Counted from the stretch's first letter, positions 11,623 through 45,710 are shown. The stretch: 64,000 bases of DNA from Octopus sinensis (GCF_006345805.1 NC_042997.1:165850001-165914000), one strand, 5' to 3'. The notes: generated by a model not told the origin, from the sequence alone. Made by a program: numbers and translations.

Positions 11623-12499
11623 CCTTCCTACTAAAGGCGCCAAGCTTGAAATTTTGGGAGAGGAATAGCTGATTGCTTCAACCCTAGTACTTGACTGGTA
11701 CTTAATTTATTGACCCTGAAAGGATGAAAGACAAAGTCGACCTTGCTGGAATTTGAACTCAGACATAAAGACAGATGAAATGCCACTAAGCATTTTGCCC
11801 AGTGTGCTAACGATTCTGCAAGCTTGCCACTTTTGTTGATAATAATGGTTTCAAATTTCGCTACAAGTGCAGCAATTTTGGGGAGGGAATGAGTCAATTA
11901 CTCTGACCCCAGTGTTCAATTATACTAATTTTTTCAACTCTAAAAGGATGAAAGGCAAAGCTGACCTCAGTGGAATCTAAACTCAGAATGTAATAACGGG
12001 CAAAATACCGCTAAGCATTTCATCCAGTGTGCTAACAGTTCTACCAGTTTGTCACCTTCTCAATGATAATAATAATAATAATGTCTCTGATAAAAGTACA
12101 AGGCCAGCAATTTTTTGAGGAGTGGGGTTAAATTGATATCATCAACACCAGTACTTGATTGTTACTTTATTTACAGTGGGATGAAAGGCAGAGTCGATCT
12201 TGGCAGGGCTTGAATTCAGGATGTAAAGAGGTAGAATGAATACTGCAAAGCATTTTTTCAATACTTTAGTGATTCTGCCAGCTCTCCACCTTACTATTCA
12301 TAATGTTTTCATATATGGGAGAATTATCTCAACTCTGTAGAAGTGGTGAAATAGGAAGTTGCGTGTGCACACACACACAGACTTTTACACACATATGCAC
12401 ATGCAGAACTACATTCATGCACATACATACACAAGCACATGTGTGTATCAGTTACTTTCAAATCAATTTGTAAATAATTTCAATCTATTTTTCTTGCAG

Positions 12500-12838
12500 C
12501 TGCTGGAACCCCAGCTGACAGGGAAACCAATTTCCTGGAAAAGAGTCGAGTTTTTTAAAAATGAATTGGCAACAACTGTTGAACACTTAGACAAAGCTTT
12601 TCTCCAAGACGGACCATATTTAGCTGGTCAGAAAAAAATATCAATCTGTGATATTCTTGGTGCTTGTGAACTGATGCAGCTCAATGCTGTTCATGAAGAA
12701 GCTTGTTATGAAAGTAACAGTAATGTTAACTCTTGGATGCAACGAGTGAAGAAAGATTTGTCCCCGCATTTTGATGAAGCTCACAAAATTGTTTATAGAG
12801 CAAGAGAAGTATTTGGTGAATCTAAAAGTAAGCTATAA
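12500..12838 (+). CDS. GSTT: GST theta terminal coding exon
   Basis: ttcttgcag|CTGCTGGAA, phase 0. Encodes LLEPQLTGKP...FLQDGPYLAGQKKISICDILGACELMQ...WMQRVKKDLSPHFDEAHK...KL-stop, the GST C-terminal helical domain. Confidence 0.93.
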   Translation: MLEPQLTGKPISWKRVEFFKNELATTVEHLDKAFLQDGPYLAGQKKISICDILGACELMQLNAVHEEACYESNSNVNSWMQRVKKDLSPHFDEAHKIVYRAREVFGESKSKL

Positions 12839-18389: not shown

Positions 18390-18605
18390 TCAAAGATAAT
18401 TTTGATTGATGGAGAGTTTTGTTGATTTTGTCATTTTCATAGTGAAATTTACTGGTGAATATCCCATTGTTAGTTGATTTAAAGAAATCACATCTATGTA
18501 ATCACTGCAGTAGTCTACCAACAAATCTTCGGGAATGTCACCACTGATTTCTATCATTACATCAGGGAAACGTTGTTTCAAACTTTCAGCATATTTTTTA
18601 GCAAC
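18390..18605 (-). CDS. QPRT: QPRT-like terminal coding exon
   Basis: tttcag|GTTGCT. Encodes VAKKYAESLKQRFPDVMIEISGDI...IDVISLNQLTMGYSPVNFTMKM...-stop, equivalent to human LKAQFPSVAVEASGGI...IDVISMGMLTQ...DFSLK. Confidence 0.9.
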   Translation of the reverse strand, partial: VAKKYAESLKQRFPDVMIEISGDIPEDLLVDYCSDYIDVISLNQLTMGYSPVNFTMKMTKSTKLSINQNYL

Positions 18606-18984
18606 CTGAAACACAAACAAACCAAAAGTCAAAAATAAATCCAAAATAGAAATTATATAGTTTCTTGATGTATGTTTACTTTTTATCTTTATCATATTTG
18701 TTACAAGCTGACAGATGCAAGAACATCAAAGATAGAAAAGGAATTCCAGAGTCTGACATTCTGAGGAACATGAATTGGACATAGGAGTTCATGTGGGGCC
18801 AGGTTGAAGAGACACAATTTGGGTCACCAGTGGAAAGAGTGAGTCAGGAGTGCTTGAAAAGAAAAGTGATCACTGTAAAATCGCTAATAAAACATAGAGA
18901 GGAGATAGTATACTTGTGGGATGCCAACCAGGTGAGTAGCTGGCAGAACTGGCAGAAACTTGTGGGATGCCAATCAGGTGAGTA

Positions 18985-19219
18985 AGGCGGTGAGCTGGCA
19001 GAAACGTTAGCACGCCAGGCAAAATGCTAAGCGTTTTTTTGTCTGCCGTTATGTTCTGAGCTCAAATTCCGCTGAGGTCGACTTTGCCTTTCATCCTTTC
19101 GGGGTCGATTAAATAAGTACCAGTTGCGCACTGGGGTCGATATAATCGACTTAATCCGTTTGTCTGTCTCTGGTTGTCACCTCTGTGTGTGGCCCCTTGT
19201 GGACAGTAAAGAAATAAGA
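18985..19219 (+). mobile_element. tRNA-derived SINE family A (head AAGGCGGTGAGCTGGCAGAA, core CCTTTCGGGGTCGATAAATTAAGTACCAG), tail type 1
   Basis: Pol III A/B-box-like head and ~13-bp TSD. More than 20 further full or partial copies, for example 1-97, 2690-2885, 11620-12060, 13430-13862, 26940-27400, 29215-29415, 35545-35722, 47258-48040, 48385-48578, 55545-55762, 57215-57390, 59760-59930 and 61895-62105. Confidence 0.9.
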
Positions 19220-19871
19220 AACCAGGTGAGTAGCTCTTTTTCAAGAGTGGAAGTTGGAGGTGGAGTGAGGGTGAACTAAAATACCTGTATATGTAGCAGC
19301 TGCACCATCTCATGCACAGAAACTGCGCTCCATTGTGGATCTTGCCTGAGCTTTGTGGAGGCTTAGTTGTCATTGGTCCTGAAATGGGTTCTAAAGAGGA
19401 AGACTAGTACTCAGTGATGCAGTCATTGTTGCATCAACTCTCCTGATGTTGCTACAACTGTTGTTCTTTAACCCAGCATCAGCTCTGATGAAACAGACCT
19501 CCAACCAAATGCAATTCAATTATGACCATTCATCCCTTTTTATATTAAAACTATATATTCAAACCAAGCACACATCTAAAACCTCTTTTCAGTGCAATTA
19601 TAATTACTTCATTAATTCATTTCATTATCTGTCTGTGTAAAGACAGTTTCGTCTTCCATGTCGTATGTTTAGAGAAAAAAACTTAAGATCCCTTCGCTCA
19701 ACCCAACTCTACCCCCTTTCTCCCTCTCTTTCATGCTCATTTATTATTGTCCTTTATTCGTTCATTTATCTAATTTTGTCACAGTTTTGCTGACTGAAAA
19801 CTGTCAGTTATAGCTCTAGTTTAGAATTCAAATGCCCAATTCTATCTCATTATTATCATAATGTTCTGCGT

Positions 19872-19959
19872 CATGGGGATTAGAAAAGAACTTTATCTTA
19901 ATTATGAAAAATAAAAGAAGTATAAAAAAAAAGCGCATTATTTATGGGATGACCCAATA
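19872..19959 (+). mobile_element. 3'-terminal fragment of the same mariner family as 4961-8530
   Basis: TTTATGGGATGACCCAA+TA, preceded by sequence matching the reverse complement of 4980-5040. Confidence 0.75.
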
Positions 19960-20424
19960 GTTATATTTGGAATACCTTTAATTGTATGTCTCCTCAGTCA
20001 GGGCTGACTTGACCTAAGGAACAACAATAACAACTTCATTCAAAGTTATCTTATTTCTGAAAGCATTTCCTATTGCCATAGACTAAGAGGTTAGCTTGCA
20101 ACATGTCAAGTCTGTGACCTAGTTCTTATTTCTAATTTCTTTAAATATTTAATTGGAAAAGACATGATTATCTCAGCTTGAATTTCTCTACTTTGCTATT
20201 CCGAAGATGTCATATAGGTATATTCAAAGCTCTGACCTCTCCACTACTTCCCTCCTCTTCCTCTTACACAGATTTAAACCTTAACACCACAAGGCACCAT
20301 TTTCTCTCACCACAGAACTTAAAGTTTGACTGCTGACTACTTGACCATCATTAATTTCAGCATGTTTCCTGATATGCCTCAGTCTTCAGGCCTGCTTGAG
20401 AAGGTGCCTTTCCAGTGGCAGTGG

Positions 20425-20662
20425 TAAATAATAATAATAATAATAATAAACATTGTGTACAGTGCTCAGGTGCACTACAACTCATTGAAAGTGTATATAT
20501 AATCAGGTGTAGTTCGACGGATTTCGGAAAGCATGAGGGCCTTAAAGGATGCAGTGTCATGGCAGTCAACAACTGACGCAGGCAGTTTATTCCATGCTTC
20601 AGCAACTCTGAGTGTGAAGAAATGTTTCCGAAAGTCATGGGAGCTGTGTTGTTTTCTGACTT
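20425..20662 (-). mobile_element. CR1-clade LINE 3' fragment (diverged subfamily)
   Basis: Antisense match to HDFRKHFFTLRVAEAWNKLPASVV plus a 3' UTR and (ATT)n tail. Confidence 0.8.
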
Positions 20663-21133
20663 TAGGAAAGAGTTTTATTGCTTGACTTAAAAATTACAGC
20701 TAAATCTTCATGTAAAGTATGAAATATAAAAGGCATTGGAGAGTTTTTTTATAACTCTATAGGTTATGGATCACACTAATGCCTTTTATATTCAATGCAT
20801 TATAAGTACTTCTGTATGAAATAGCTGTAAAATGTTAAATATATATATATAAAAAATCATCATTGTTGTTAGTGATGGAAGTGTTGGCAGCATTGTTGTC
20901 CTCTTCCACATCATCAACACCACCATTGAAAACAATGACAACAGCAACAACAATAAGAACCACAACAACAATAACAATAGCAATATTTCTTGTTAGCTTT
21001 TCTGTGATGGCATAGTTTGGAAGGTTTTACTGAGGCAGTGGCTTATGATTCAATGCCTTCCTATAGCCAACTAACTCTTTTAGTCACCTCTTACAGCACA
21101 GGAATAGGATGATGTGCCTATTCTAAAATAAAG

Positions 21134-21597
21134 TGCCATATTCTGAATGCCTTACTTCCCTGGGCATGGATACATTGAAACTCCAGCGTCTGGCAGCTGA
21201 CTTGGCAGACACCCATAAAATTATTAACCATCTTACTAACAATAACTCTGAGCACCTTTTCAAACTCCACCTGTCTAACACCCCCGGACATGTTTACAAA
21301 GTCAGAAAACAGCACAGCTCCCATGACTTTCGGAAACATTTTTTCATGCTAAGAGTTGCTGAAGTATGGAACAAACTGCCGGCATCAGTTGTTAGTTGTC
21401 GGAGCACTGCATCCTTCAAAACTTCCAAGCTTCCTGAGATTCGCCAACACTACACTTGATTTTCTTCCCTCTATACACACGCAAGCATGTATCTGACTCA
21501 TACACTGTCCACGTCCCAGACATTTGTACATTACTGCATATGCTTTATATGCACTTTTGACAAGTTGTGGTGCACCTGAGTACTGTATACAATAATT

Positions 21598-21640
<43 letters not shown>
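21134..21640 (+). mobile_element. 5'-truncated CR1-clade LINE
   Basis: YSECLTSLGMDTLKLQRLAADL...FRKHFFMLRVAEVWNKLP...RQHYT-stop, a 3' UTR, then an (ATT)n tail. Confidence 0.9.
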
Positions 21641-21712
21641 CATCATTATATAATAATCAAACATAAAAGAAATTGAAGAATTTGGAAATATAATTAAAAC
21701 TTTATTTCAAAC

Positions 21713-21844
21713 CTCTGCTGTTGGGTTTTCAAATAATATAACATCACAACCAGCATTAGCTGCTTCTAAAGCATCTTCAAGATTTCTGCATTCTACTTCA
21801 ATTTTCATGGAAAACCCACTAACAAGCTTAGCATCTTTCACAGC
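21713..21844 (-). CDS. QPRT: QPRT-like coding exon 2 (132 nt)
   Basis: aaacag|GCTGTG...GCAGAG|gtttga, phase 0-0. Encodes [44 protein letters not shown], equivalent to human AVRAARQ...KVEVEC...LVLLDNFKPE. Confidence 0.92.
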
Positions 21845-22454
21845 CTGTTTTCCATATTCAAAAACAAATAAAAAATAATACAGAGCAGAGTAAGTACAGA
21901 CGTAGCAAATTCCACAAAATAAGAATATAATAATTTAGCAATAACTAATAACTTATACATAAAAAAAATGAATGTAAAAAATTTAATGATTTATATGGGA
22001 AAACAAACAAGGAAAACATATGAAAACTGTTTATTTCTGATTAAATGAAAATAATTAGAGAAATAAAATATATTTAAAGTAAGTAGGCATGTACTGTATA
22101 CAAGAAACAAGATGGAAGTGAGTCTCAGCTAGACTCCTTGAGGTTAAGGAACTTACAAATCCTGGGTAGATAACAAAGACGGAGAAAGTGGATTCAGTAA
22201 ATTATTTGCAGAGAAATGGATTAAGTAACAAAGGTAGTTAGAGAATGTGATACATTTATCAGGTTTAACCTAGTCATGAACAACACAACTGTGACATTTA
22301 TCTGTACACATGCGTTACAGTCAGAGGTGGCAGATGAACAGAAAGACTACTTCTGTGTGCTCCTCCCGCAGATAACCTTGAGTAATGAATGGTAGCAATG
22401 TCTTATTGTATTTGGTGATTTTAATGGACTTATATATATATATATCAAATTCGA

Positions 22455-22862
22455 TGATTGGCATCCATGCTAGTGTAGCACTAAGAGCACCACCCGAGTG
22501 TGATCGTTGCCAGAGCAGCTAACTGGCGTTTGTACCAGTGGCACGTAAAAAGCACCATTTGAGCGTGATCCTTACCAGTGTCACCTTACTAGCATTTTTG
22601 CCGGGGTGCAGGTGACACGTAAAAAAAACCCACGATGTTTTCATAGCCGTAGCCAGTACTGCCTGACTGGCCCTTGTCCTGGTGGCATGTAAAAGCACTC
22701 ACTACACTCTCGGAGTGGTTGGCATTAGGAAGGGCATCCAGCTGTAGAAACTCTGCCAGATCAAGATTGGAGCCTGGTTCAGTCATCTGGTTCACCAGAC
22801 CTCAGTCAAAATTGTCCAACCCATGCTAGCATGGAAAGCGGATGGTAAACGATGATGATGAA
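22455..22862 (+). mobile_element. SINE-like family D with internal GGCACGTAAAAAGCACC tandem units and an RTE-type (GAT)n tail
   Basis: GGCATTAGGAAGGGCATCCAG and tail GCATGGAAAGCGGATGGTAAACGATGATGATG. Other copies at 13937-14240, 29740-29925 and 39150-39330 (-). Confidence 0.75.
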
Positions 22863-23553
22863 CAACGATATAACCTTTTACATGAAGTCTGAAGCAAAGT
22901 ACTTTAAATTTTATAAAGAAAGTCAAGTTATAAATCATTGGTTAATGTTTTCTGATATCTAAGATGTATTTTCTAGTTTAGCCTGTTAAGCATGTTCAGC
23001 TTTAGCAGTTATCACAGTATGAGATCACTATTAATAATTTTTATCTCTTCTTTACAGTTGCCAAGCAATCATGGAATGTATTCCCTGCATTATGTTTATT
23101 ACAATTAATACACTTGTCACAGCTTAACAATCACCAAATTAATGAATATTTTACAGTCAGTCTTTCTTTCATGCAACATAGTCTTTAGAATTATTTCTGT
23201 TGTTTCTTTAACCACAGCAGTTCAGAATATTTATATATCAATAAATTATTTGCCTAAAGTATTTAGTGGATATTTTAAAAGATTGCTAAAAGTAGACAGC
23301 TAAGACAAGTTTGTTTTCATAGCTTTATGTTCTTCCAAGCTTCCTGCTGCTCTCTTTACTCTTTTACTTGTTTCAGTCATTTGACTGTGGCCATGCTGGG
23401 GCACCACCTTTAGTCAAGCAAATCGACACCAGGACTTATTCTTTGTAAGCCTAGTACTTATTCTATCAGTCTCTTCTGCTGAACCACTAAGCTACTGGGA
23501 CGTAAACACACCGCCATTGGTTGTCGAGCGATGTTGGGGGGGACAAACACATC

Positions 23554-23590
<37 letters not shown>

Positions 23591-23601
23591 ACACACATAC
23601 A

Positions 23602-23637
<36 letters not shown>

Positions 23638-23928
23638 TATATATACATACATATATACGACAGGCTTCTTTCTACTGATTCTGCTAAACTATATCGAAGC
23701 AGGATCCATCAAACTGACTGACATGAATATCTAAGCTATTCTGAAAATGAAATGGTGGTGTTGAAAGCATTTTAATAGTTATTTTCTTTTTCTCATTTAA
23801 AGAAGTAACATGCGCCTTTTAAAAAAATGTATTAATGACATAATGTTGAAGCTAGAATGGATGTGGATTATTTCGATATACTTTCTTTGTCTTCTTTTAC
23901 TGGTTTCAGTCATTGAACTGCAGTCATG

Positions 23929-24530
23929 CAGGTGGAAGGCAAAACTCACCTCACTGCATCACCGGTCTGGAACCCCTATCTTGCCCAGGATATCAATCGT
24001 CTGGAAGCCGTTCTGCGACGTGCAACCAAAAGAATACCCTCCATCGGGCATTTGCCATATTCTGAATGCCTTACTTCCCTGGGCATGGATATATTGAAAC
24101 TCCGACGTCTGGCAGCTGACTTGGCAGACACCCATAAAATTATCAACCATCGTACAAACAATAACTCTGAGCACCTTTTCAAACTCCACCCATCTAACAC
24201 CCGTGGACATATTTACAAAGTCAGAAAACAGCAGAGCTCCCATGACTTCAGGAAACATTTTTTCACGCTGAGAGTTGCTGAAGCATGGAACAAACTGCCG
24301 GCATCAGTTGTTAGTTGTCAGAGCACTGCATCCTTCAAAACTTCCATGCTTCCTGAGATTCGCCAACACTACACCTGATTTTCTCCCCTCCATACACACA
24401 CAAACATGTATCTGACTCATGCATTGTTCGCTTTCCAGACATTTGTACATTACTGCATATACTCTATACGCACTTTCGGACAAGTTGTGGTGCACCTGAG
24501 CACTGTATACAATAATTTTATTATTATTAC
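23929..24530 (+). mobile_element. 5'-truncated CR1-clade LINE
   Basis: SPVWNPYLAQDINRLEAVLRRATKRIP...WNKLP ORF2 C-terminus, same 3' UTR, ATT tail. Confidence 0.92.
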
Positions 24531-26090
24531 AGGTAGAGAAAATATTACTGGACACTAGTAATAATAAGGCAGCACACCACAGTATAAATAGCAGATTACA
24601 ATTGCAGAGATTAAAGTACTGAACTGAAATCTTTTCATGAATAAAACATGCAATGGACTAGTAACTTCCTGTTTAAGAGCAGAAATGTTTATCATCCACT
24701 TCACACTCATTTTGAATGGTATACTTAACCAGGTACCTAGTTAAACATCACCACCTAGTTCTTGGGTTTTTAGTTCACTTTGTTGCAAGCATTCAGGCCA
24801 TGGCTTTGGTTTCAGTTTAACTTCTTCCCTTCTTCTTATCAATCATTGGTGCCCTGAAAAAATTTTTTAAAAAAGAGGGTGATGGGTATGGCCCTTCTAT
24901 CCCTGACTAAGCAGTGAAAAAAGAAAAAGATAACTATGATTAATTGCAACACATTTTGCACCATCAGGTAAAAGGTAACATGTTAGATAAGTAAACATCT
25001 CTCCCATCACTATTATGCTGTAACTGATTTGTTTAGGAGGCAAAGACTGTGAAACTATGACTTATCATTAGTGTGTTAGTTTGTGTGTGTATGTAAGGTC
25101 ACGAAGATATCCGAAGTGAATTGTCAAGTTGTCACGGAAACAACTGAGGTCTTGCTATGGTTTTGTCGAGTTAAAACAAAGGAACGCTCAACGGGCTTCT
25201 TTCAGTTTCCACCTACCAAATCCACTCACAAGGCTTTGGTCAGCCCGAGGCTATAGTAGAAGACACTTACCCAAGGTGCCACACAATGGGACTGAACCTG
25301 GAACCATGTGGTTGGGAAGCAAGCTTCTTATTTCATTACTGCCCACAAGGGAAAGCAAGCTTCTTACCACACAGCCACTTCTATATGACACTAACAACTC
25401 TGTCACTTCACCATATCAATGAATCTATTAAACATAGTGATTAATGAAATCCTGTGGTCTATGAAAACTGTAATCATATCAACATTTTCTATTTTAATAT
25501 GATCATGAGAATATATTATATTATCACACTGTGATAGCTGGATTAGTTAGAGATTATAATGTTTGAGCTGATAAGTTGTTGGTCTCTGGGTAATAGTTTC
25601 ATGAGTTCATATTCTTTAACCAGACACTTGTAGTTGCTAACCAACATAATGGTGTCCTAAGCTGAAGAGTTTCTTTCATTTTTTACTTCTTCCAGTCACT
25701 GAACTGCAGTCATGCCTCTCCATATTCAATCTCCAACATCATTCTTATTGTTCTACCCCACTTTCTTCACCATCCTAATACATTTCAAACAAGGGATTCC
25801 ATCATATCTCTTAATACCTAAAAAACTCCACCATCACACTTCTGTAATGCTAGCCATCACTCCAACTTCACTTATGATTGACATACATCACTCTCAATGA
25901 GAGAGAGAGAGAGAGAGAGAGGGCACCTAACTCTAAGACTATCCATTGCCTCTCTCTCTCTCTTTTCCTACCAAACATGTAATTGCCATGACTGTCTCTT
26001 TCCCATTAACTTCTGTCATTACTATCTTCCTTCCATTACTCCTCCCAGTATTATCCCTTCCGTTAATCCCACTTCAACCATCCTCTCACC

Positions 26091-26249
26091 CCAACACTAC
26101 ATGTGATTTTCTCCTCTCTATACACACGCAAGCATGTATCTGACTCATACACTGTTCACTTCCCAGATATTTGTACATTACTGCATATGCTTTATACACA
26201 CTTTTGACAAGTTGTGGTGCACCTGAGCACTGTATACAATAATTTCATG

Positions 26250-26293
<44 letters not shown>

Positions 26294-26305
26294 CATTATT
26301 ATTAT
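26091..26305 (+). mobile_element. CR1 3' UTR-only fragment
   Basis: ccaacactac...gtggtgcacctgagcactgtatacaataatttc followed by (ATT)n. Confidence 0.8.
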
Positions 26306-27133
26306 AAACAAAAATTTAGTCCAAAATAAATATAAAGAAACACTAACAAATAGACTAAGAAGACAATGAACATTTGAGATATCAGTAACAAACGAGTAAT
26401 TAGGTCACTAAAAATCATTAATACTTCACTGGAATTGGCAATGTTACTAATTTATTTTAGCCAGTCTCCTATTTCTTTAACCCCTCATCTCATTTTAACT
26501 CTGCTGAGTTTCTCTCTGTTCTATCTACTCCCATTCTTTTCTGAACAACAACAGCAGTTGTTTTTTGTTTTTGTTTTGTTTTTTTTTCCAACAAGGTTTT
26601 CTACTCAACAAAGTCAACAGGTTTCTTCAGAGGTAAGTTACATTCTTGTTGTACTGGAAGTTCATAGTAGTTTGACATCAAGTATGTTTGTTTTGTGTAA
26701 AGAAAAATAAAGGCGTTAATCATTGTGCATTATTTATAGTCTCTAAAGTCTAAAGATAAACAAAGGAGTTAGGAACAAGAAGGATTGGTAAAGTGTGTTC
26801 CTGTGCATGCATGCACACATGTGTGTGCTTATGTGTGTGAGTGTGTATGTTGATAACTAGTATATTAACTAGCTTTACACACTTTGCTGTAATGCTACAA
26901 CAAAAACAACAACAACAACAAAAACAGTAATAATAATCCTTTCAACTACAGGTACTTTAGGAAGGAACTAGTTGATTGCATCAACCCCAGTACTCAACTG
27001 GTACTTAATTTATCGATCCTGAAAGGATGAAGGCAAAGTTGACCTTGGCAGAATTTGAACTCAGAACATAGTGACAGGTGAAAAACTGCTAAGCATTACA
27101 CCTGGAGTGTTAATTATTCTAATAATAATAAAC

Positions 27134-27174
<41 letters not shown>

Positions 27175-28719
27175 TAACAATAATAATAATTCTCTATAAT
27201 TTTTGGCACAAGACCAGCACTTTTCTGGGGAGGAGCAAGTTAGTTACATCAAACCCAGTGCTCACTTGCTTAAATTGACCATGAAAAAATGAAAGGCAAA
27301 GTTGACCTAGGTGAAATTTGAACCTAGAACGTAAAGGCAGATGAAATACCATTAAGCATTTTGCTTAGGGAGCTAATGATTCTGCCAGTTCGCTATCTTA
27401 ATAATAATAATAATAATAATGATGATGATGATGATGATAATAATAAAAATGATAATAATAATAATGGTTTCAAATTTTGGCACAAGGCCAGCAATTTCGT
27501 GGGAGCAGGTATGTCAATTACATTTTGCTCGCATATATATATATATATATATATATAATACTGGTGAATCCTAAGACCCAGTTTTCAGTGAGACAGCTGG
27601 TTAATAATACAATAACTAAAATAATTAGGAGCCAACTACTGAACCTCTAAGCAGTTGCTCAGCCTGCTAGCTATAGCAACCAAGTTTGTACTCAAATCAC
27701 ATACGGCTGTCTTAAAAAAAGGATAAATTGGATAATGTGGGCCTAGATACAGAAGAAAAGAGAGAAAAAAATTGGAATGGTCTTGGCTTGAACAACTTTG
27801 ATTATAGGTTTGATTTATTAGGGCTGACCAGGGGCTAACAAAATATAGGATAATGGATATTTACAAAATCAGCAACAACTACAAGTAAAATTGCAAAATG
27901 AGGGCCATACATGGTCAGCATATCTGCTAGAGATAGCAGCCAAATCTCTCCCAAATTACTCTCTGCTGTTTTGAAAAGGAGAAGGACATATATTAAGTAA
28001 TGTAATTCTAGAAAACTTCAGAAAATCTGGGATGGCCATGACTGGAATGCCTTTAATTGTAGGTTTGTTTGATCAGAGTTTCACACAGAATGAAATAATA
28101 ATAACAACTAGAACAGTAATTTTGACGGTAACAGCAGCAACAGTATCTATAGAATAAATATCTACATGAGTGGCACACTAGCAATCTTTTTGCCTTCACT
28201 TACTAATAGATAGATGGAACAAACTTCTCTTTGAAGAGAACAAATCAAATAGCATTGAAATATTAAATTACTGGAGTTAAGTTGCAGACTCCAGGCTATG
28301 GACAAACATTCTCTAAATTCATACATATAATATTGGTAGCATGTCCAGACCTATGCTTAACCACCCTATATTATGCCCTCAAGTATATACAGAAGCTTCT
28401 ATGTAATATCATAACCTGCTAATGATTGCAGTCAAATGGAACTCATATCACATGTCCTGCTATCTTTAAAAGAAAGAAGAACCTACTGAATAATAAAGTT
28501 AGATATGTTATGAAGGAAAGAAAAAAGGATGGTCATGGCTAGAATGCTTTTGGGTTTGGTTTGTTTAATCAGAATTCATCTGATGCTAAACAACAGCAAC
28601 TACAACAATAAAAATAACAACAACCTCAAACTGCTCTGCATCTCACTTTTAAATTATATTGTATTTCCTTTCTTTAGTATTCCTCTATAATGAGCTATGT
28701 TACACTCTACTATATTACA

Positions 28720-29135
28720 TTAACCATCACATGGTTCAGTCCTTTTGCAGTGCCTCAATGACCCTGGAGGTTATGCCAATAGTGCACAAACTCCTGGTTG
28801 TGACTTCTGTACTGGATAGGATAGATGCCAGGCTAATACAGACCACCTCTCTCTAGAGGTAAAAATGAGTTTGCATAGGGTCAACACCCCTACCTATGAA
28901 AAAAAAACAAAACCAAGTTACAGAAGCATCAACAATAATTCAAAACCAACAAGAACTAGAAGAGGAAGGCTTTCCATGAGGGAATAATAGTTTTAGTGTA
29001 CCAAAATCTGAAAGGATGCTTTAAGGAAAAGGCAGGGATCCAACTGGAGACAAGTAGAAAAGACAACCCAGGGTCGAGAACCTATGGAGAAGAGTGGTCA
29101 ATAGCCTATGCCCCATAGGGAACAAAGTGTTTAAA
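28720..29135 (+). mobile_element. Probable non-autonomous or internally deleted LINE-derived repeat
   Basis: GC-richer block ending GGTCAATAGCCTATGCCCCATAGGGAACAAAGTGTTTAAATAAAT, a 3' end typical of LINE tails. No intact ORF. Confidence 0.4.
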
Positions 29136-29940
29136 TAAATAATATTACATTACACAACATTATACAACATCCCATTACATTGCGTTCTGTAACACTGCAA
29201 TACATTACATAACATTGGCACAAGATCAGCAAGTTCGGGGAAGGGGACTAGTCGATTACATCGAACCCAGTACTCAACTGGTAATTATTTTATCAACCCT
29301 GGAAGGATGAAGGACAAAGTTAACTTCAGCAGAATTTGAACTCAGGATGTAAGTACAAATGAAATGTCACTAAGCACTTTGTTTGGTGAGCTAATGATTC
29401 TACCAGCTCACCACCTTATATACATTACATAATATTAGACTACACTACATAATATAATTACACTTTACTCCACTACATCACATAGCACTACATAACTTTG
29501 TTATATTCTACACTACAATTTAGTACAGTATGCTACACTATATCATATTGTATTAAGAAAAGAAAAGCTACCAGCTTGGGTGGTCATTTATTTCCTCTAG
29601 AGCAAGAAATCTGTTCCTATCTCTCTATTATACTCTTGTCTTTCAATGTCTAGCATAAACTACCACCATTAATGCTACAACCCCACTCAATCAAAGGGTC
29701 TAGTCTTGTGAGCAATTAGGCAGTCTCATTAGTATTGATGGGGAGGGGTACAAAAAAAGCAACCAGTATACTCTGTAAAGTGGCGGTGCTAGGAAGAGCA
29801 TCCAGTCATAGAAACCATGTCAAAACAGACATAGAATCTTGACACAGTTCTCTGATCTGTATGACCCTGACAAACCATCCAACCTATTCCAGTATGGAAT
29901 ATGGATATTAAATGATGTTGGTGATGATGTACAGCTTCTT

Positions 29941-30163
29941 ATTTCTTTATTGCCCACAAGGGGCTAAACATAGATGGGACAAACAAAGGGATTAAGTCGT
30001 TTAGATCGACCCCAGTCCATAACTGGTACTTAATTTATCGACCCCAAAAGGATGAAAGGCAAAGTCGACCTCGGCGGAATTTGAACTCAGAATGTAACGG
30101 CAGACGAAATACAGCTAAACATTTCGCCCGGTGTGCTAACGTTTCTGCCAACTCGCAGCCTTA
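29941..30163 (-). mobile_element. SINE family A, tail type 1
   Basis: 14-bp TSD ATGTACAGCTTCTT at 29927-29940 and 30164-30177. Confidence 0.92.
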
Positions 30164-31237
30164 ATGTACAGCTTCTTACTACAAACTCAATAACAACTTC
30201 AACAAAAGCAATTCCAGCAATAAAAACAATTACATCAACAGCAGCAACTGAATGGCATCAGTAGCTACAACTAAAAAGGCAAATTATTTTAAAAACACCA
30301 GTTTGTGTTGTCCAAGAGAGACTTAATCAACCAGTTTATATTCTATATTCCTTGTCAACATCATAAAATTTCTAAATGATACCACAAAAGCCTTATACCA
30401 TTTTATGCATCAGTATTCAAAAGGTGTATTTGTCTTTTAACTGATACCCAGTTTTTTTTTGTTTTTTTTTTCTTGGCTCTGGCTGGTAAAATAATTTCTT
30501 TTCAGCTAGTCTCAAGGAAATTATTCAAAGGGACAAAAACTTTATTCCTTTACAGGTTTCAGTTATTGAACAGCAGCTGTGCTAGGAAAGCAGCTTCAGC
30601 AGCTTTAATTGATCATATTGATTACAGTACTTAATTCAATCTGGTATTTTTTATTTTTATTTTGAATTCTGTTTAACCAGTAAATTAAGGGAGAGATTAT
30701 AAACAAAAACAGTTTTTTAGACTGGTGTAAATATAACCACAGATACAGATGAATACACACAATCATCATCATTATCGTCATCACCAGCAGCAGCACCACC
30801 AAAAACAACAAGATTATCTTTTTACATCTACTTTCAATACTGGTGAGCTGCTACTCCCATAGACTGTGGTGTTCATAAATGTTATTTGGCTAATTACTTC
30901 ACTTCTACTGCCAGATGCCATTTCTATTGCCAGCCACTATACAGAGAGTACTGGGTGCATTTTCAAGGGGCAGTTGAATAGTCATTGGAGAGACAGAATT
31001 ATTGGAATCACACAGCCTTCTGCTTTCTCTGCTTATTTGCAATCATTTTACAGAGCGTAGAGAAAGCATTTTTCATGGTATCAACACTAGAAAGAATATG
31101 TTTACCTGTCCCTCTAAGAGCAGCACAATTTGGAGGTTTTCTCATGGCACCAACACTGGAGGTGGTGTAAAGGTGCTTTGTATACAGGAAATGAAAAGAA
31201 TATTTAATATCCTGAGATAGTGGACTGAGGAGGAGAG

Positions 31238-31242
<5 letters not shown>

Positions 31243-31330
<88 letters not shown>
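31243..31330. repeat. (GA)n microsatellite
   Basis: Uninterrupted GA tract. Many other microsatellites: (TA)n 14780-14830 and 53490-53610; (CA)/(CATA)n 23555-23655 and 55240-55355; (AAT)n 11575-11622 and 27120-27190; (CCA)n 62425-62478. Confidence 0.95.
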
Positions 31331-31334
<4 letters not shown>

Positions 31335-32809
31335 AGTCACAAATAGGTAAGTACCCAAAAATCTGGCTGATGAAACAAAAGAGTAGGCAATAGCTGGAAA
31401 TATAGATGGCAAACTCTACAAGTTAAAAGACTTAATGACATTCATTAATACAGCATCTGATCAAAGTAATCTTTGACATCTTTTAAGACCTTTTGTTTTA
31501 TGAACATTTTATGGCTGAGAGCAAAGTGAAAAGAAGTGGTATAAATGTGATAAAGAAATCCCCTAATCTTAAATAATCTGCAATATCTAAAAATCGTCAA
31601 TAAAATGAAATTGAATGTGGATCTTGTTATTTTTTCTTCTGAGTATTCCTTCCAAGTATTTCAAATTTTTATAAGATATTTTAAGTTTCTACATGTAACT
31701 TCTTTATTATTAATTATATTGAGACCCCCTTCGGTCATGACTGACCATGGAATTGCACCTAGAAAGTTACCCTCCCAGGCACAAGTCCGGGCAAGATTGT
31801 TTTATGGAAGATCAGCAGTCACCCATGCATACCGGCCTCCCCTCTCCACACCACCAGTGTTATCCAAGGGAAAGGCAAAGGCCGATACAGATTGGCACCT
31901 GTGACATCGCAACTCATTTCTACAGCTGAGTGAACTGGAGCAACGTGAAATAAAGTGTCTTGCTCAAGAACACAACAGGCAGCCCCTGTTGTGTTACATA
32001 TATATATATTGAATGTAACTTTTGTCCTCAGCATGCAAAAACTACATTTAAAAATAAAAAAATAATCTGGTGAAAATTTGAAATGTTTCAAATTCTTGGA
32101 AGCAAGTTAACAAGATTACCGATTTTTATTTTTCAGTGAAAGTGCAAGTTTAGAAATGGTTGAATTTGGCAAACCGAAAGCTGTACAAATCGGGTGGAAC
32201 TTAATTGGTGATTAATATCTCAGAGGAAAGAATTATCTACTAGAAGATATTTACCGTATATCTAGTAATCATAAGAGATATTCAGTCAACTACTACATCT
32301 GATGCATCGTTGGAATAATTCATTGGCGTGATGTAATCAACCAATGCGTTTCGTTTACTTTCACACATAAATCAAGTTTCTTTCAGTTTTATTTTATTGT
32401 CGATTATGAATTATTAAAGTTTTATTTAACCTTCATCTATTCATCTTTCTTTCACTTTATTATCCGTCATTATATGTCCATCAAGCGAAAATCTTCGTGC
32501 CTGTTGACACCAGCATGTTTTGGACGAAATACTGTTACTGGGGGGGGGGGGGGAAGGAAATGTGTTACTAGCTTATTGATCTGAAAGATGGTGACACGTT
32601 TGTTTGTGCTAGCTTGTCAGCTGTTAAACAGGTGTTGACAAAAGGGGGCACTATGAATACGACATGAGATATTCACCACAATAACATCTTTCGACCATGT
32701 CACTATACACACCTCCATTCAACTCAACACAGACTCTTTATAATACGATATATTCAGCTTCTTCACAACTACGACGCCAAACTACAATTTCTGATGAAAT
32801 AACGATGGG

Positions 32810-33010
32810 AACCTTTAAGGGTCGCATGGTCTGCTAGAAATAGCATCTACATCTCCCTCAGATCACATCCTATTGTCTTAAATAAAGAAATGACACAGGA
32901 GTTAAGGTAGTACCACATACTCCTAAAAAGACAGGGTGGTCACAGCTGGAATACCTTTGATCATAGGTCAACTCGATCGAGATTAACCTAAGCTAAACAA
33001 CAAGAGCAAC
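32810..33010 (+). repeat. Interspersed repeat family E (CTGCTAGAAATAGC...GGTCAYRGCTGGAAT.CCTTTGATCATAGG...CTAAACAACAA)
   Basis: Related copies at 950-1205, 27620-28110 and 28380-28620; unclassified, with a CAA tail. Confidence 0.7.
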
Positions 33011-33071
33011 ATAGTTTCGGATAAAGACAAGAAATTGCTTATGGTATTAGGGAAATCACAAGTTTACTTAC

Positions 33072-33683
33072 CTTTTGGATACTTCCTGCAGTCCATATAT
33101 GGTTGTCTCGCAAGATAATCATAGAAGATAAATCGTACCTGTGGGTTGCTAAACCCCCAACAAGAAGAGAATACTTCTCTACTAGACGGAATCCCGGAGT
33201 AGTTCTGCGTGTATCAGCCAGTTTCCCTTTCCAGCCAACCCCTTCAGCTTTCAGGGCCAATTTGCGGGCCAAAGTCGCTAGTCCACTTGCCCTGCACGCA
33301 CAGTTGAGGGCTACACGTTCTCCGAGCAACAAGCACCGTACTCTGCCTTTGATAATCGCAACTGTTTGGACTGGATTCAGGTATGTTCCTTCCGGATAAA
33401 GCCATTCAATTTCACACTCCAGCTCTTTAAATACAGCATCTATAAATGGTCTTCCTGCCAAAACACCAGCCTGTCTCATGATCAAGGCAGCGGTTACATT
33501 TTTCTCCCCAACTACGAACCCACCGAAATCAAAATTTGGCGAATCTTCTTTAATCCATTCTCTGGCTAAATGTTGTACAGTAACAGGTGATAATGCATGG
33601 TAAGTTTCAGGACCCGAAGTAATCCGAGAATGGTTATTATTGTAATGTAAATAGTCCTTCCTTTGGTCGTAATAAGCAGACAT
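33072..33683 (-). CDS. QPRT: QPRT-like (nicotinate-nucleotide pyrophosphorylase family), coding exon 1 (204 aa)
   Basis: ATG at 33683 and donor AAG|GTAAGT at 33072/33071. Contains WIKEDSP, GVLAGRPF, LLLGERVALN and DTRRTTPGFRLVEKY...HRYDL...LRDNH, which align with human QPRT residues ~10-183. Confidence 0.92.
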
Positions 33684-41956: not shown

Positions 41957-43252
41957 TTATTTATCATGCTTTTCAGATCTGTGTTTATGTTTCTTGTGTT
42001 TTTTTGATTTTTTGTGTTTCTGTTTGTGTTTAAGGCCAGCATCTTCAGTGTCTTCTGTATCATCATCTGCACTGAGTGGTCTTTTTAAGCTATATCTACT
42101 TTCGGGTAACACATAATCACTGATTACGGTAGTTTCTCTAGTTTGTTCGCATCCACGACTCGTGTCTTCTCTCGCTTCTTGCATAACTTTTATTGAAGAC
42201 TTACTTTCTGTCAAAGATACATTCTTTGATGCAGAGCTGATTTCAGAGTCAATTTTATCACTTTTCCTTGATTCTTTTCTTATATCAGATGTATTTTTAT
42301 CCCTGTGTTTATAATCAGAACTTCCTCTTGAACTCTTTTCGCCGTCTCTATGCCTTGCTTCGTGTTTTTCGTGACTACTTTTTTTGTTGTCCGATTTAGA
42401 TTTTCTTGACCGATCACGATCGTCTTCCCGCCTACTACTGGAATGAGAACGTCTATCGCTTCTCTTTGATGACTGGACTTCAGCAGATTCGACTTCAGAC
42501 GAATCTTTCAACAACGTCTGTAGCAATTCTACCTGATTATGAATAACTTCTCGTATGATCTCTGTATAAGTTTTTTTCGTAATGTGGACATTTTTAGCAC
42601 GGTACGATTGCCTTCGGCGTTTATAGTCGCGCATCGCAGCCCATTTCTCTGTTTCGGAGGAAGGTTCATTAAGCTCTCTACCTTTGGCAGCCTTCTTGAT
42701 GAGAGTTTCGAAGTCTGTAGTAAGAAGAGTATCTTCTGGTAAGGACTGCATGCGCTGAAATTCTTTAGCGACTCGAACCACATAGTCATATATTGCTCGT
42801 CTCTCATCTACACTGTAATCTCTCTGTTGAATTTCAAGTGTCTGTGGTACTTCCCTTTCATAATTTACCGACATCGTGCCATTATTTCGATGAAACTCCT
42901 TCAGTATTGATTGTAAGTTACTTTTTTCTAGTTTAATTGTCATAATATTAGTTTTCTCGTAAAAGAAACTTGAAGATCCAGGAACATTAGCAAGTTCATC
43001 AGATGTATATCCAAGTTGTAACCACTTACAGCATTGTTCATGTTTCTCCAGCGAATTTCTTGGCAGTCTGTGGTTAACATTGTATGAACACGGAACTTTT
43101 TCTGAGTCTTGTTCAAAAAAATGCTGAGGCGTCCATTGCACCCTTTCAAAAAGTTTACCCAAATCATCTTCACATCCCTTTAAATATTCATCTAAGTCAG
43201 TTATATAAGTTTTACGTTTCTTTAACAGATCTTCGTTTACAGTAGTAACCAT
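41957..43252 (-). CDS. SNRNP48: U11/U12 snRNP 48 kDa protein, single coding exon (431 aa)
   Basis: CHHC zinc finger CSYNVNH-x9-H-x3-C, and the family signature RDYKRRRQSYRAKNVHITKKTYTEIIREVI, followed by an R/S/K-rich low-complexity tail. The first in-frame ATG (GAAATGG) is at 43252; the ORF-track start at 43270 is TTG. Confidence 0.95.
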   Translation of the reverse strand: MVTTVNEDLLKKRKTYITDLDEYLKGCEDDLGKLFERVQWTPQHFFEQDSEKVPCSYNVNHRLPRNSLEKHEQCCKWLQLGYTSDELANVPGSSSFFYEKTNIMTIKLEKSNLQSILKEFHRNNGTMSVNYEREVPQTLEIQQRDYSVDERRAIYDYVVRVAKEFQRMQSLPEDTLLTTDFETLIKKAAKGRELNEPSSETEKWAAMRDYKRRRQSYRAKNVHITKKTYTEIIREVIHNQVELLQTLLKDSSEVESAEVQSSKRSDRRSHSSSRREDDRDRSRKSKSDNKKSSHEKHEARHRDGEKSSRGSSDYKHRDKNTSDIRKESRKSDKIDSEISSASKNVSLTESKSSIKVMQEAREDTSRGCEQTRETTVISDYVLPESRYSLKRPLSADDDTEDTEDAGLKHKQKHKKSKKHKKHKHRSEKHDK

Positions 43253-43687
43253 TTCGACATCAGTTTGCAATTTTAATGTAATTAACGCGAGAGTTATTGC
43301 TCTTACCGGTGTTCATACATAATTGTTCCTTCTACAAATTTGAGTGAAGATAGTTTAAGTAAAGACAATTCATGGAAGGTAATAATAAGTGTTTAGTGAA
43401 CGAATAGAATCAATGTTTATGTGTTTTGCGATATAGAAAAAATAAATAATTTACTAGAACAGTGAAATTGTTTGCTCGTTCATGAACTAAATTATGTGCA
43501 TAGAGATAAAGTTAATGAACAAAATTTCGAAAATTTATTTTTTTAAGCACATTTTTATGCTATGCAACAATGTATGTGTTTTTCTTCTGTGTGTATAAAT
43601 TTACATGCCGGTGTGTATGGATGAAGTGTGTTGAAGTAAATAGTTAGAGAAAAAATAAAATATAAATAAAACTGATAAAGTTCTATA

Positions 43688-45197: not shown

Positions 45198-45666
45198 GGC
45201 ATTTGCCATATTCTGAACGCCTTACTTCCCTGGGCATGGATACGTTGAAACTCCGACATCTGGCAGCTGACTTGGCAGACACCCATAAAATTATTAACCA
45301 TCTTACAAACAATAACTCTGAGTACCTTTTCAAACACCACCCATCTAACACCCGTGGACATGTTTACAAAGTCAGAAAACAGCACAGCTCCCATGACTTT
45401 CGGAAACATTTTTAACGCTTAGAGTTACTGAAGTATGGAACAAACTGCCGGCATCAGTTGTTAGTTGTCGGAGCACTGCATCCTTCAAAACTTCCATGCT
45501 TCCTGAGATTCGCCAACACTACACCTAATTTTCTCCCCTCCATACACACGCAAGCATGTATCTGACTCATACACTGTTCACTTCCCAGACATTTGTACAT
45601 TACTGCATATGCTTCTTATGCACTTTTGACAAGTTGTGGTGCACCTGAGCACTTTATACTATAATT

Positions 45667-45710
<44 letters not shown>
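45198..45710 (+). mobile_element. 5'-truncated CR1-clade LINE
   Basis: Near-identical to 21134-21640, with an (ATT)n tail. Confidence 0.9.

Follow-up and report, generated by a model that had tools for sequence, protein, structure and literature searches.

In the current analysis a stretch of 64,000 nucleotides from Octopus sinensis (GCF_006345805.1 NC_042997.1:165850001-165914000), referred to below as the window, has been found to carry on its minus strand, between positions 18390 and 33683, a single-copy gene, the cephalopod orthologue of quinolinate phosphoribosyltransferase (QPRT/NadC, EC 2.4.2.19), which is a type II phosphoribosyltransferase. The gene is intact and correctly spliced, and the active-site pocket of its product has been remodelled, also at three positions that are invariant in 118 non-cephalopod animal-type homologues. 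Tryptophan is converted to nicotinamide adenine dinucleotide (NAD) by way of QPRT alone, and the enzyme also clears the excitotoxin quinolinate. We tentatively regard the octopus protein as a still-catalytic QPRT with altered kinetics, a proposal to which we give somewhat less than an even chance. A dead enzyme fits the observed pattern less well than a pocket that is in use and has been retuned.

The product encoded in the window is 100% identical to XP_029639121.1, the nicotinate-nucleotide pyrophosphorylase isoform X1 of Octopus sinensis, which identifies the window as the O. sinensis QPRT locus. The two Pfam domains of the family have been assigned to it, QRPTase_N (PF02749, E-value 1.6e-17) and QRPTase_C (PF01729, E-value 3e-46). 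Residues 31-307 align with residues 10-286 of human QPRT without a gap, at an offset of +21 (E-value 6e-83, about 45% identity). An earlier description made from the DNA alone, referred to here as the sequence-only reading, had supposed a conserved QPRT fold, and the predicted structure bears this out. The AlphaFold model (mean predicted local distance difference test score, pLDDT, of 83.7) superposes on human QPRT in Foldseek with a target-normalised template-modelling (TM) score of 0.93-0.96 and a root-mean-square deviation of 1.6-1.7 Å. The human and pig enzymes (2JBM, 4KWV, 5AYX-5AYZ, 4I9A) and yeast Bna6 (3C2E) have the same two-domain type II phosphoribosyltransferase fold (target-normalised TM 0.90-0.96). 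The octopus protein differs from these by the substitutions K139R, K171R, D222E, G250D, M169I, L221F, F224P and Q274M (human numbering) and by an N-terminal extension predicted to be disordered, residues 1-25 of the model having pLDDT below 50. The extension had been put at about 23 residues; it is real and amounts to 21 residues relative to human QPRT, but only to about 10 relative to other molluscs.

In a neighbour-joining tree the cephalopod QPRTs group together within Mollusca as the sister clade of the gastropods. The orthologues of other molluscs (Patella, Lottia, Mizuhopecten, Lymnaea and others) share 54-63% identity with the octopus protein and retain every canonical catalytic residue. 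The cephalopod branch is longer, with a root-to-tip distance of 0.52 against a median of 0.42 in other invertebrates; the value for human QPRT is about equal (0.524). Cephalopod orthologues have been recovered from O. vulgaris, O. bimaculoides, Argonauta hians, one further octopod (genomic contigs) and Sepia, in which fully spliced transcripts occur in at least 12 RNA-seq assemblies (runs SRR19578108 and SRR20545809 being S. esculenta RNA-seq). The second, canonical QPRT for which the sequence-only reading advised a search has not appeared. No other cephalopod QPRT-like protein is present among the best 120 matches of the protein search, in a collection that includes the annotated proteomes of three Octopus species and of Argonauta, and no second QPRT-like sequence lies within the window. 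Squids (loliginids, sepiolids or oegopsids) are absent from the same 120 matches, though Sepia has a QPRT-like transcript, which could reflect a loss of QPRT in squids or a gap in the protein collection.

Two sets of homologues have been used to judge how unusual each residue is. The first comprises 118 non-cephalopod animal-type homologues taken from the best 120 matches, and the second comprises 150 representatives of 50%-identity clusters, drawn from 8151 family members and aligned by MAFFT in its fast mode. Alignment to human QPRT upholds both residue lists of the sequence-only reading: R102, R138, H160, R161 and E201 are kept, and K139R, K171R, D222E, F224P, G250D, G270N and D280N are all present. 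Also unchanged from human are N223, S248, G249 and the TTPGF and DNH motifs.

The cluster of basic residues that binds quinolinate consists of R102, R138, K139, H160, R161 and K171. Four of these are identical in the octopus and the two lysines are replaced by Arg, all six thus remaining basic. The residue equivalent to K139 is encoded by octopus codon 160 (AGA, 33204..33206; this and all the codons below lie on the minus strand), which is AAA (Lys) in Argonauta and Sepia, and that equivalent to K171 by codon 192 (CGA, 33108..33110), which is CGG (Arg) in Argonauta and a Lys codon in Sepia. Codon 190 (33114..33116) encodes Ile in the place of M169, a position occupied by Ser in Sepia and by Met in at least 98% of other sequences. 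Both M169 and K171 touch the nicotinate ring in human QPRT (PMC4726147). In the acidic pair serving Mg and ribose, E201 is kept and D222 is replaced by Glu (codon 243, GAA, 21728..21730), the residue also found in Argonauta; Sepia has GAC (Asp). The substitutions at the charged positions of the pocket are therefore all same-charge: two of Lys by Arg and one of Asp by Glu.

In the loop that holds the 5-phosphate, S248 and G249 are kept and G250, the second Gly of the SGG motif, is replaced by Asp (codon 271, GAC, 18537..18539) in Octopus, Argonauta and Sepia alike. Position 270, which is Gly or Ser in other QPRTs, is Asn (codon 291, AAT, 18477..18479) and in Sepia His. Codon 295 (ATG, 18465..18467) places an octopod-specific Met at Q274, which is Gln in at least 98% of animal-type QPRTs and His in the bacterial LTHS motif. 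Asn at D280 (codon 301, AAT, 18447..18449) is a common natural variant and uninformative.

The altered sites had been described as nearly invariant from bacteria to human. This stands for K139, K171 and D222, each of which is, like R161, invariant in all the 118 animal-type homologues, and does not stand for positions 250, 270 and 280, at which natural variants occur elsewhere. K139R, K171R and D222E are the truly unusual changes. At position 270 the 118 homologues have 70 Gly and 48 Ser, and at position 280 they have 83 Asp and 35 Asn. Position 250 is Gly in 117 of them; in the wider set it is Asn in 15 of the 150 representatives, the 12 inspected being otherwise canonical, and Asp in one Spirochaetales enzyme from a metagenome-assembled genome, again otherwise canonical. 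SGN is also found in the deposited structures of T. thermophilus (1X1O), S. pyogenes (5HUP) and F. tularensis (3TQV). These bacterial NadC proteins with SGN or SGD loops resemble the octopus protein in having a side chain at position 250, and the family can evidently do without G250; unlike the octopus protein, they keep K139, K171 and D222.

Seven further changes at columns conserved in at least 98% of the homologues had been missed by the sequence-only reading, namely M169I, M220L, L221F, Q274M, S282T, L23I and K49R. Octopus deviates at 11 of the 76 columns conserved at this level among the 118 homologues, for which the median is 0 and the mean 0.6. The set contains a single mammalian sequence, that of human QPRT, whose activity is proven, and this one deviates at 9 of these columns, none of them catalytic. 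For this reason the count of altered conserved columns is no test by itself, and it is the identity of the altered columns that matters.

The distribution of the substitutions among lineages differs from site to site. L23I, M220L, L221F, G250D and the loss of M169 are common to Octopus, Argonauta and Sepia; K171R, D222E, F224P, G270N, Q274M and D280N are common to Octopus and Argonauta; K139R (AAA to AGA) is found only in Octopus. Sepia alone has R161K, G270H and one extra residue within TRKTT, which there reads TRNKTT. This distribution suggests that the coleoid pocket has changed repeatedly and independently, basic residues staying basic and acidic residues staying acidic. The origin was stepwise: G250D, L221F, M220L and a change at M169 arose on the coleoid stem, K171R, D222E, F224P, Q274M, G270N and D280N followed in the octopods, and K139R was added in the genus Octopus, the new states of the pocket being then frozen by selection. 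The Sepia transcripts (L001, L002 and L005-L014) carry the TRNKTT insertion together with R161K, the latter encoded by AAG, a change of the G-to-A type at an invariant Arg.

Coleoids recode extensively by adenosine-to-inosine RNA editing, and the genomic sequence would overstate the divergence of the protein if editing restored the canonical residues. One or two A-to-G changes would indeed suffice at three sites, giving Gly at 250 (GAC to GGC), Ser or Gly at 270 (AAT to AGT or GGT) and Asp at 280 (AAT to GAT). Editing cannot restore K139 from AGA, K171 from CGA or D222 from GAA, and positions 270 and 280 are variable in any case. Moreover, at least 12 independent Sepia RNA-seq assemblies keep GAC at 250, CAC at 270 and AAG at 161, which shows that such editing is not dominant there. 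We consider this explanation very unlikely.

The coding sequences of the Argonauta and O. bimaculoides loci have been used to estimate the ratio of nonsynonymous to synonymous substitution (dN/dS). Between Octopus and Argonauta it is 0.04-0.06 at a dS of about 0.83-0.94. For O. sinensis against O. bimaculoides it is about 0.22, a value based on just 16 codons that differ, and for two Sepia sequences it is 0.02. Between the octopods and Sepia dS is saturated, and hence no ratio is available for the stem on which the first changes arose. Octopus and Argonauta differ at 28 amino acids, only one of which (R160K) falls in the catalytic core, residues 122-229. A ratio of about 0.05 together with a nearly unchanged core indicates a functional gene on which purifying selection is strong, with a remodelled pocket that is itself conserved. 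The ratio near 1 that the sequence-only reading had named among its grounds for refutation is thus not what is found between Octopus and Argonauta.

A decaying pseudogene or an artefact of the gene model has also been considered. The protein collection yielded no full-length spliced octopus transcript, only genomic Logan contigs, which speaks in favour of this reading. This candidate has been rejected as extremely improbable, because dN/dS is about 0.05 over a dS of about 0.9, the splice sites are canonical, and the same exon structure with open frames is present in four octopods and in the Sepia mRNAs.

The interpretation of the octopus protein as a retuned and probably catalytic QPRT draws on these observations jointly. 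Since charge is kept at the charged sites and the other ligand motifs are intact, the pocket would still bind a pyridine dicarboxylate and phosphoribosyl pyrophosphate (PRPP) with Mg. The protein would then most likely still perform the QPRT reaction, in which quinolinate and PRPP yield nicotinate mononucleotide (NaMN), CO2 and PPi, with a changed Km, kcat or substrate inhibition. The neighbouring changes may represent compensatory repacking, L221F and F224P around D222E, and M169I beside K171R. The single copy, the constraint on the core, the same-charge swaps, the packing changes and the long stasis taken together suggest a pocket that was retuned and not abandoned. QPRT has been lost in insects and ostariophysan fish, and the whole pathway in flatworms, according to a survey of more than 5,000 eukaryotes (bioRxiv 10.64898/2026.06.05.730449). 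Such outright losses in insects and ostariophysan fish lead one to expect that a useless copy would vanish and not persist.

Several points weigh against this interpretation. Arg, Arg and Glu at 139, 171 and 222 occur in none of the 118 animal-type QPRTs, and the only otherwise canonical exception at these sites among the 150 representatives is a partial sawfish model with K171R. That Lys has been held so invariably at these sites makes it doubtful that Arg is its equivalent in normal catalysis. G250D would add a negative charge beside the 5-phosphate pocket. We know of no Lys-to-Arg data for the QPRT lysines, only the Ala mutants being known to be inactive. K139A and K171A serve as the catalytically inactive mutants of human QPRT (PMC5517448; bioRxiv 10.64898/2026.04.01.715697). 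The same survey reports truncations of the kynurenine pathway in Cephalopoda, its text leaving the genes lost in cephalopods unspecified (bioRxiv 10.64898/2026.06.05.730449), so that endogenous quinolinate may be scarce. In a lung-cancer preprint, human QPRT is reported to take part in caspase-3 regulation without using its catalytic activity (bioRxiv 10.64898/2026.04.01.715697), which implies that selection can act on a non-enzymatic function; this precedent is known only for the human protein, and nothing ties it to the cephalopod substitutions.

Many of these points are the ones that would be expected of a pseudoenzyme, which would bind quinolinate, PRPP or both, or else protein partners of the caspase kind, without turnover and would have a sensing, buffering, regulatory or scaffold role. 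Three positions invariant in all the bona fide QPRTs sampled are replaced, activity is lost when the two lysines are mutated to Ala (PMC5517448), cephalopods reportedly have a truncated pathway, and the human protein acts on caspase-3 without catalysis (bioRxiv 10.64898/2026.04.01.715697). Purifying selection despite an altered site, as a retained pseudoenzyme would show, is also seen here in the dN/dS of 0.04-0.06. A predicted splice form points the same way: NCBI isoform X2 (XP_036362313.1, 275 residues) arises by an in-frame skip of exon 2 (21713-21844, minus strand) and, being without E222 and E243, could not be catalytic. Against a pseudoenzyme stand the conservation of charge in all the swaps at charged positions and the very strong constraint on the other first-shell and PRPP-loop residues, which is unexpected for a surface or scaffold function alone. 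Nor is there, among the best 120 matches, an active paralogue that it could regulate.

Known dead relatives offer a further comparison. The full-length exceptions at positions 139, 171 and 222 among the 150 representatives are the proteins of the trematodes Dicrocoelium and Calicophoron, and of the cestode Mesocestoides, one further protein (P0254) and two paralogues of Blumeria graminis; the sawfish model belongs to a few fragments that also differ at these sites. The degenerate QPRT-like proteins (P0236, P0242, P0231/P0281, P0254, P0249 and P0240) have lost most of their catalytic residues, with non-conservative loss of R102, R138, K139, H160, the KDNH motif and D222/N223. Three of them are 466-537 residues long and P0281, a member of the Mesocestoides cluster, has 577, whereas the two Blumeria proteins (303 and 308 residues) and the Mesocestoides representative (296) are of normal length. 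Judged by their residues, these proteins are clearly dead derivatives, and that the exceptions at K139 and K171 are degenerate argues that Arg is no normal substitute for these lysines. The literature search found nothing on these proteins.

They resemble the cephalopod QPRTs in having L221F and a residue other than Gly at 250; Arg occurs at 171 in some of them, and Glu at 222 in Mesocestoides. Their QPRT fold has persisted where NAD or kynurenine metabolism is reduced. The persistence of dead QPRT-fold proteins with L221F and a non-Gly 250 in Blumeria and in flatworms, where the pathway is said to be lost, is in favour of a pseudoenzyme in the octopus. Unlike them, the octopus keeps the sites of R102, R138, K139, H160, KDNH and D222/N223 as same-charge residues. 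As the dead QPRTs are scrambled at precisely these residues, the octopus protein looks quite unlike them. On balance we consider the pseudoenzyme distinctly less probable than a retuned enzyme.

A third explanation is that the protein remains a phosphoribosyltransferase and has changed its substrate to another anionic N-heterocycle, such as nicotinate or a pyridine or quinoline carboxylate of the 3-hydroxykynurenine-ommochrome branch. The changes M169I, K171R, L221F, F224P, Q274M and G250D cluster in the base-binding and phosphate pockets, and two of these positions, M169 and K171, make contact with the ring of nicotinate in human QPRT (PMC4726147). Episodic change followed by long stasis is typical of a functional shift, and Sepia has independently altered other base-binding residues, by R161K and by the insertion beside K139. 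Cephalopods are also reported to divert 3-hydroxykynurenine to ommochromes (bioRxiv 10.64898/2026.06.05.730449). The five basic residues that grip both carboxylates of quinolinate are still basic, which argues for a dicarboxylate ligand, and no candidate substrate is backed by evidence. A changed substrate is therefore held to be improbable, less so than editing and more so than a pseudoenzyme.

A broader claim is that the octopod QPRT no longer makes NaMN and is either a regulator that binds quinolinate and PRPP or an enzyme acting on another heterocycle, which would have evolved along with the truncation of the kynurenine pathway. We regard this as unlikely, at something below one chance in three. 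If it is true, the octopod QPRT would represent an early, charge-preserving stage of a recurrent route whose late stage, with the fold outliving the pathway, is seen in the flatworms and Blumeria, and an old second function of the QPRT fold would be implied. In the literature no paper was found on cephalopod QPRT or on QPRT pseudoenzymes, and a search for octopus or cephalopod with QPRT, HAAO, 3-hydroxyanthranilate or kynureninase found only bioRxiv 10.64898/2026.06.05.730449.

To return to the retuned QPRT, the octopus gene is a natural variant tested by selection, in which both invariant lysines and the invariant Asp are swapped for residues of the same charge. It would thereby separate the features of the type II phosphoribosyltransferase site that the chemistry requires from those that are only conserved. 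Should the protein prove active, the compensated set of substitutions would be useful in enzyme engineering and in interpreting human variants. An inactive protein, or one with a new substrate, would mean that coleoids rely on vitamin B3 salvage and that a second function of the QPRT fold has been conserved, of which the flatworm and Blumeria proteins also give a hint.

The gene model of the sequence-only reading, three exons spliced in frame to 319 residues with canonical sites and no stops, agrees with XP_029639121.1 and lies on the minus strand. Coding exon 1 (33683..33072, 612 nucleotides, codons 1-204) begins at the first in-frame ATG, at 33683, and is followed by a GT donor at 33071-33070. 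It covers the N-terminal extension predicted to be disordered, the QRPTase_N domain and the quinolinate-binding motifs ERVALN (R123), TRRTT (R159, R160), HR (H181, R182) and LRDNH (R192). Intron 1 (21845..33071, minus strand, 11.2 kb) holds interspersed repeat copies and microsatellites. Coding exon 2 (21844..21713, minus strand, 132 nucleotides, codons 205-248) encodes E222, equivalent to human E201, and the motif LFENP, in which E243 and P245 correspond to D222 and F224. It is followed by intron 2 (18606..21712, minus strand, 3.1 kb) and by coding exon 3 (18605..18390, minus strand, 216 nucleotides including the TGA, codons 249-319), which encodes the motifs EISGDI (D271, human G250), SLNQLTM (N291 and M295, human G270 and Q274) and VNFT (N301, human D280). 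All the introns are of the GT..AG type and all the junctions are in phase 0, and the 319-residue frame has no internal stop. The exon junctions are the same in the spliced Sepia mRNAs and in the Argonauta and O. bimaculoides loci.

An interspersed repeat with 92-94% identity among copies is present at 21134-21600, 24053-24518 and 45204-45669, with a partial copy at 26091-26247. The copies carry an open reading frame without a Pfam match (LPYSECLTSLGMD...), and three of the four are intronic in QPRT, that at 45204-45669 lying outside the gene. The dinucleotide and mononucleotide microsatellites of intron 1 (AC/GT, CT/AG and A/T runs, at about 23458-23734, 31008-31412 and 26214-26369) are the source of long low-complexity open reading frames.

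Two other regions of the window show similarity to known domains. An open exon of 437 residues at 41957-43270 (minus strand) encodes a U11-48K-like CHHC zinc finger and a tail rich in Lys, Ser and Arg, and probably belongs to a neighbouring gene for the U11/U12 small nuclear ribonucleoprotein 48K protein. An open reading frame at 12359-12838 (plus strand) has a weak match to the C-terminal domain of glutathione S-transferase (E-value 0.0016, below the Pfam cut-off) and is possibly an exon of a neighbouring gene of that type.

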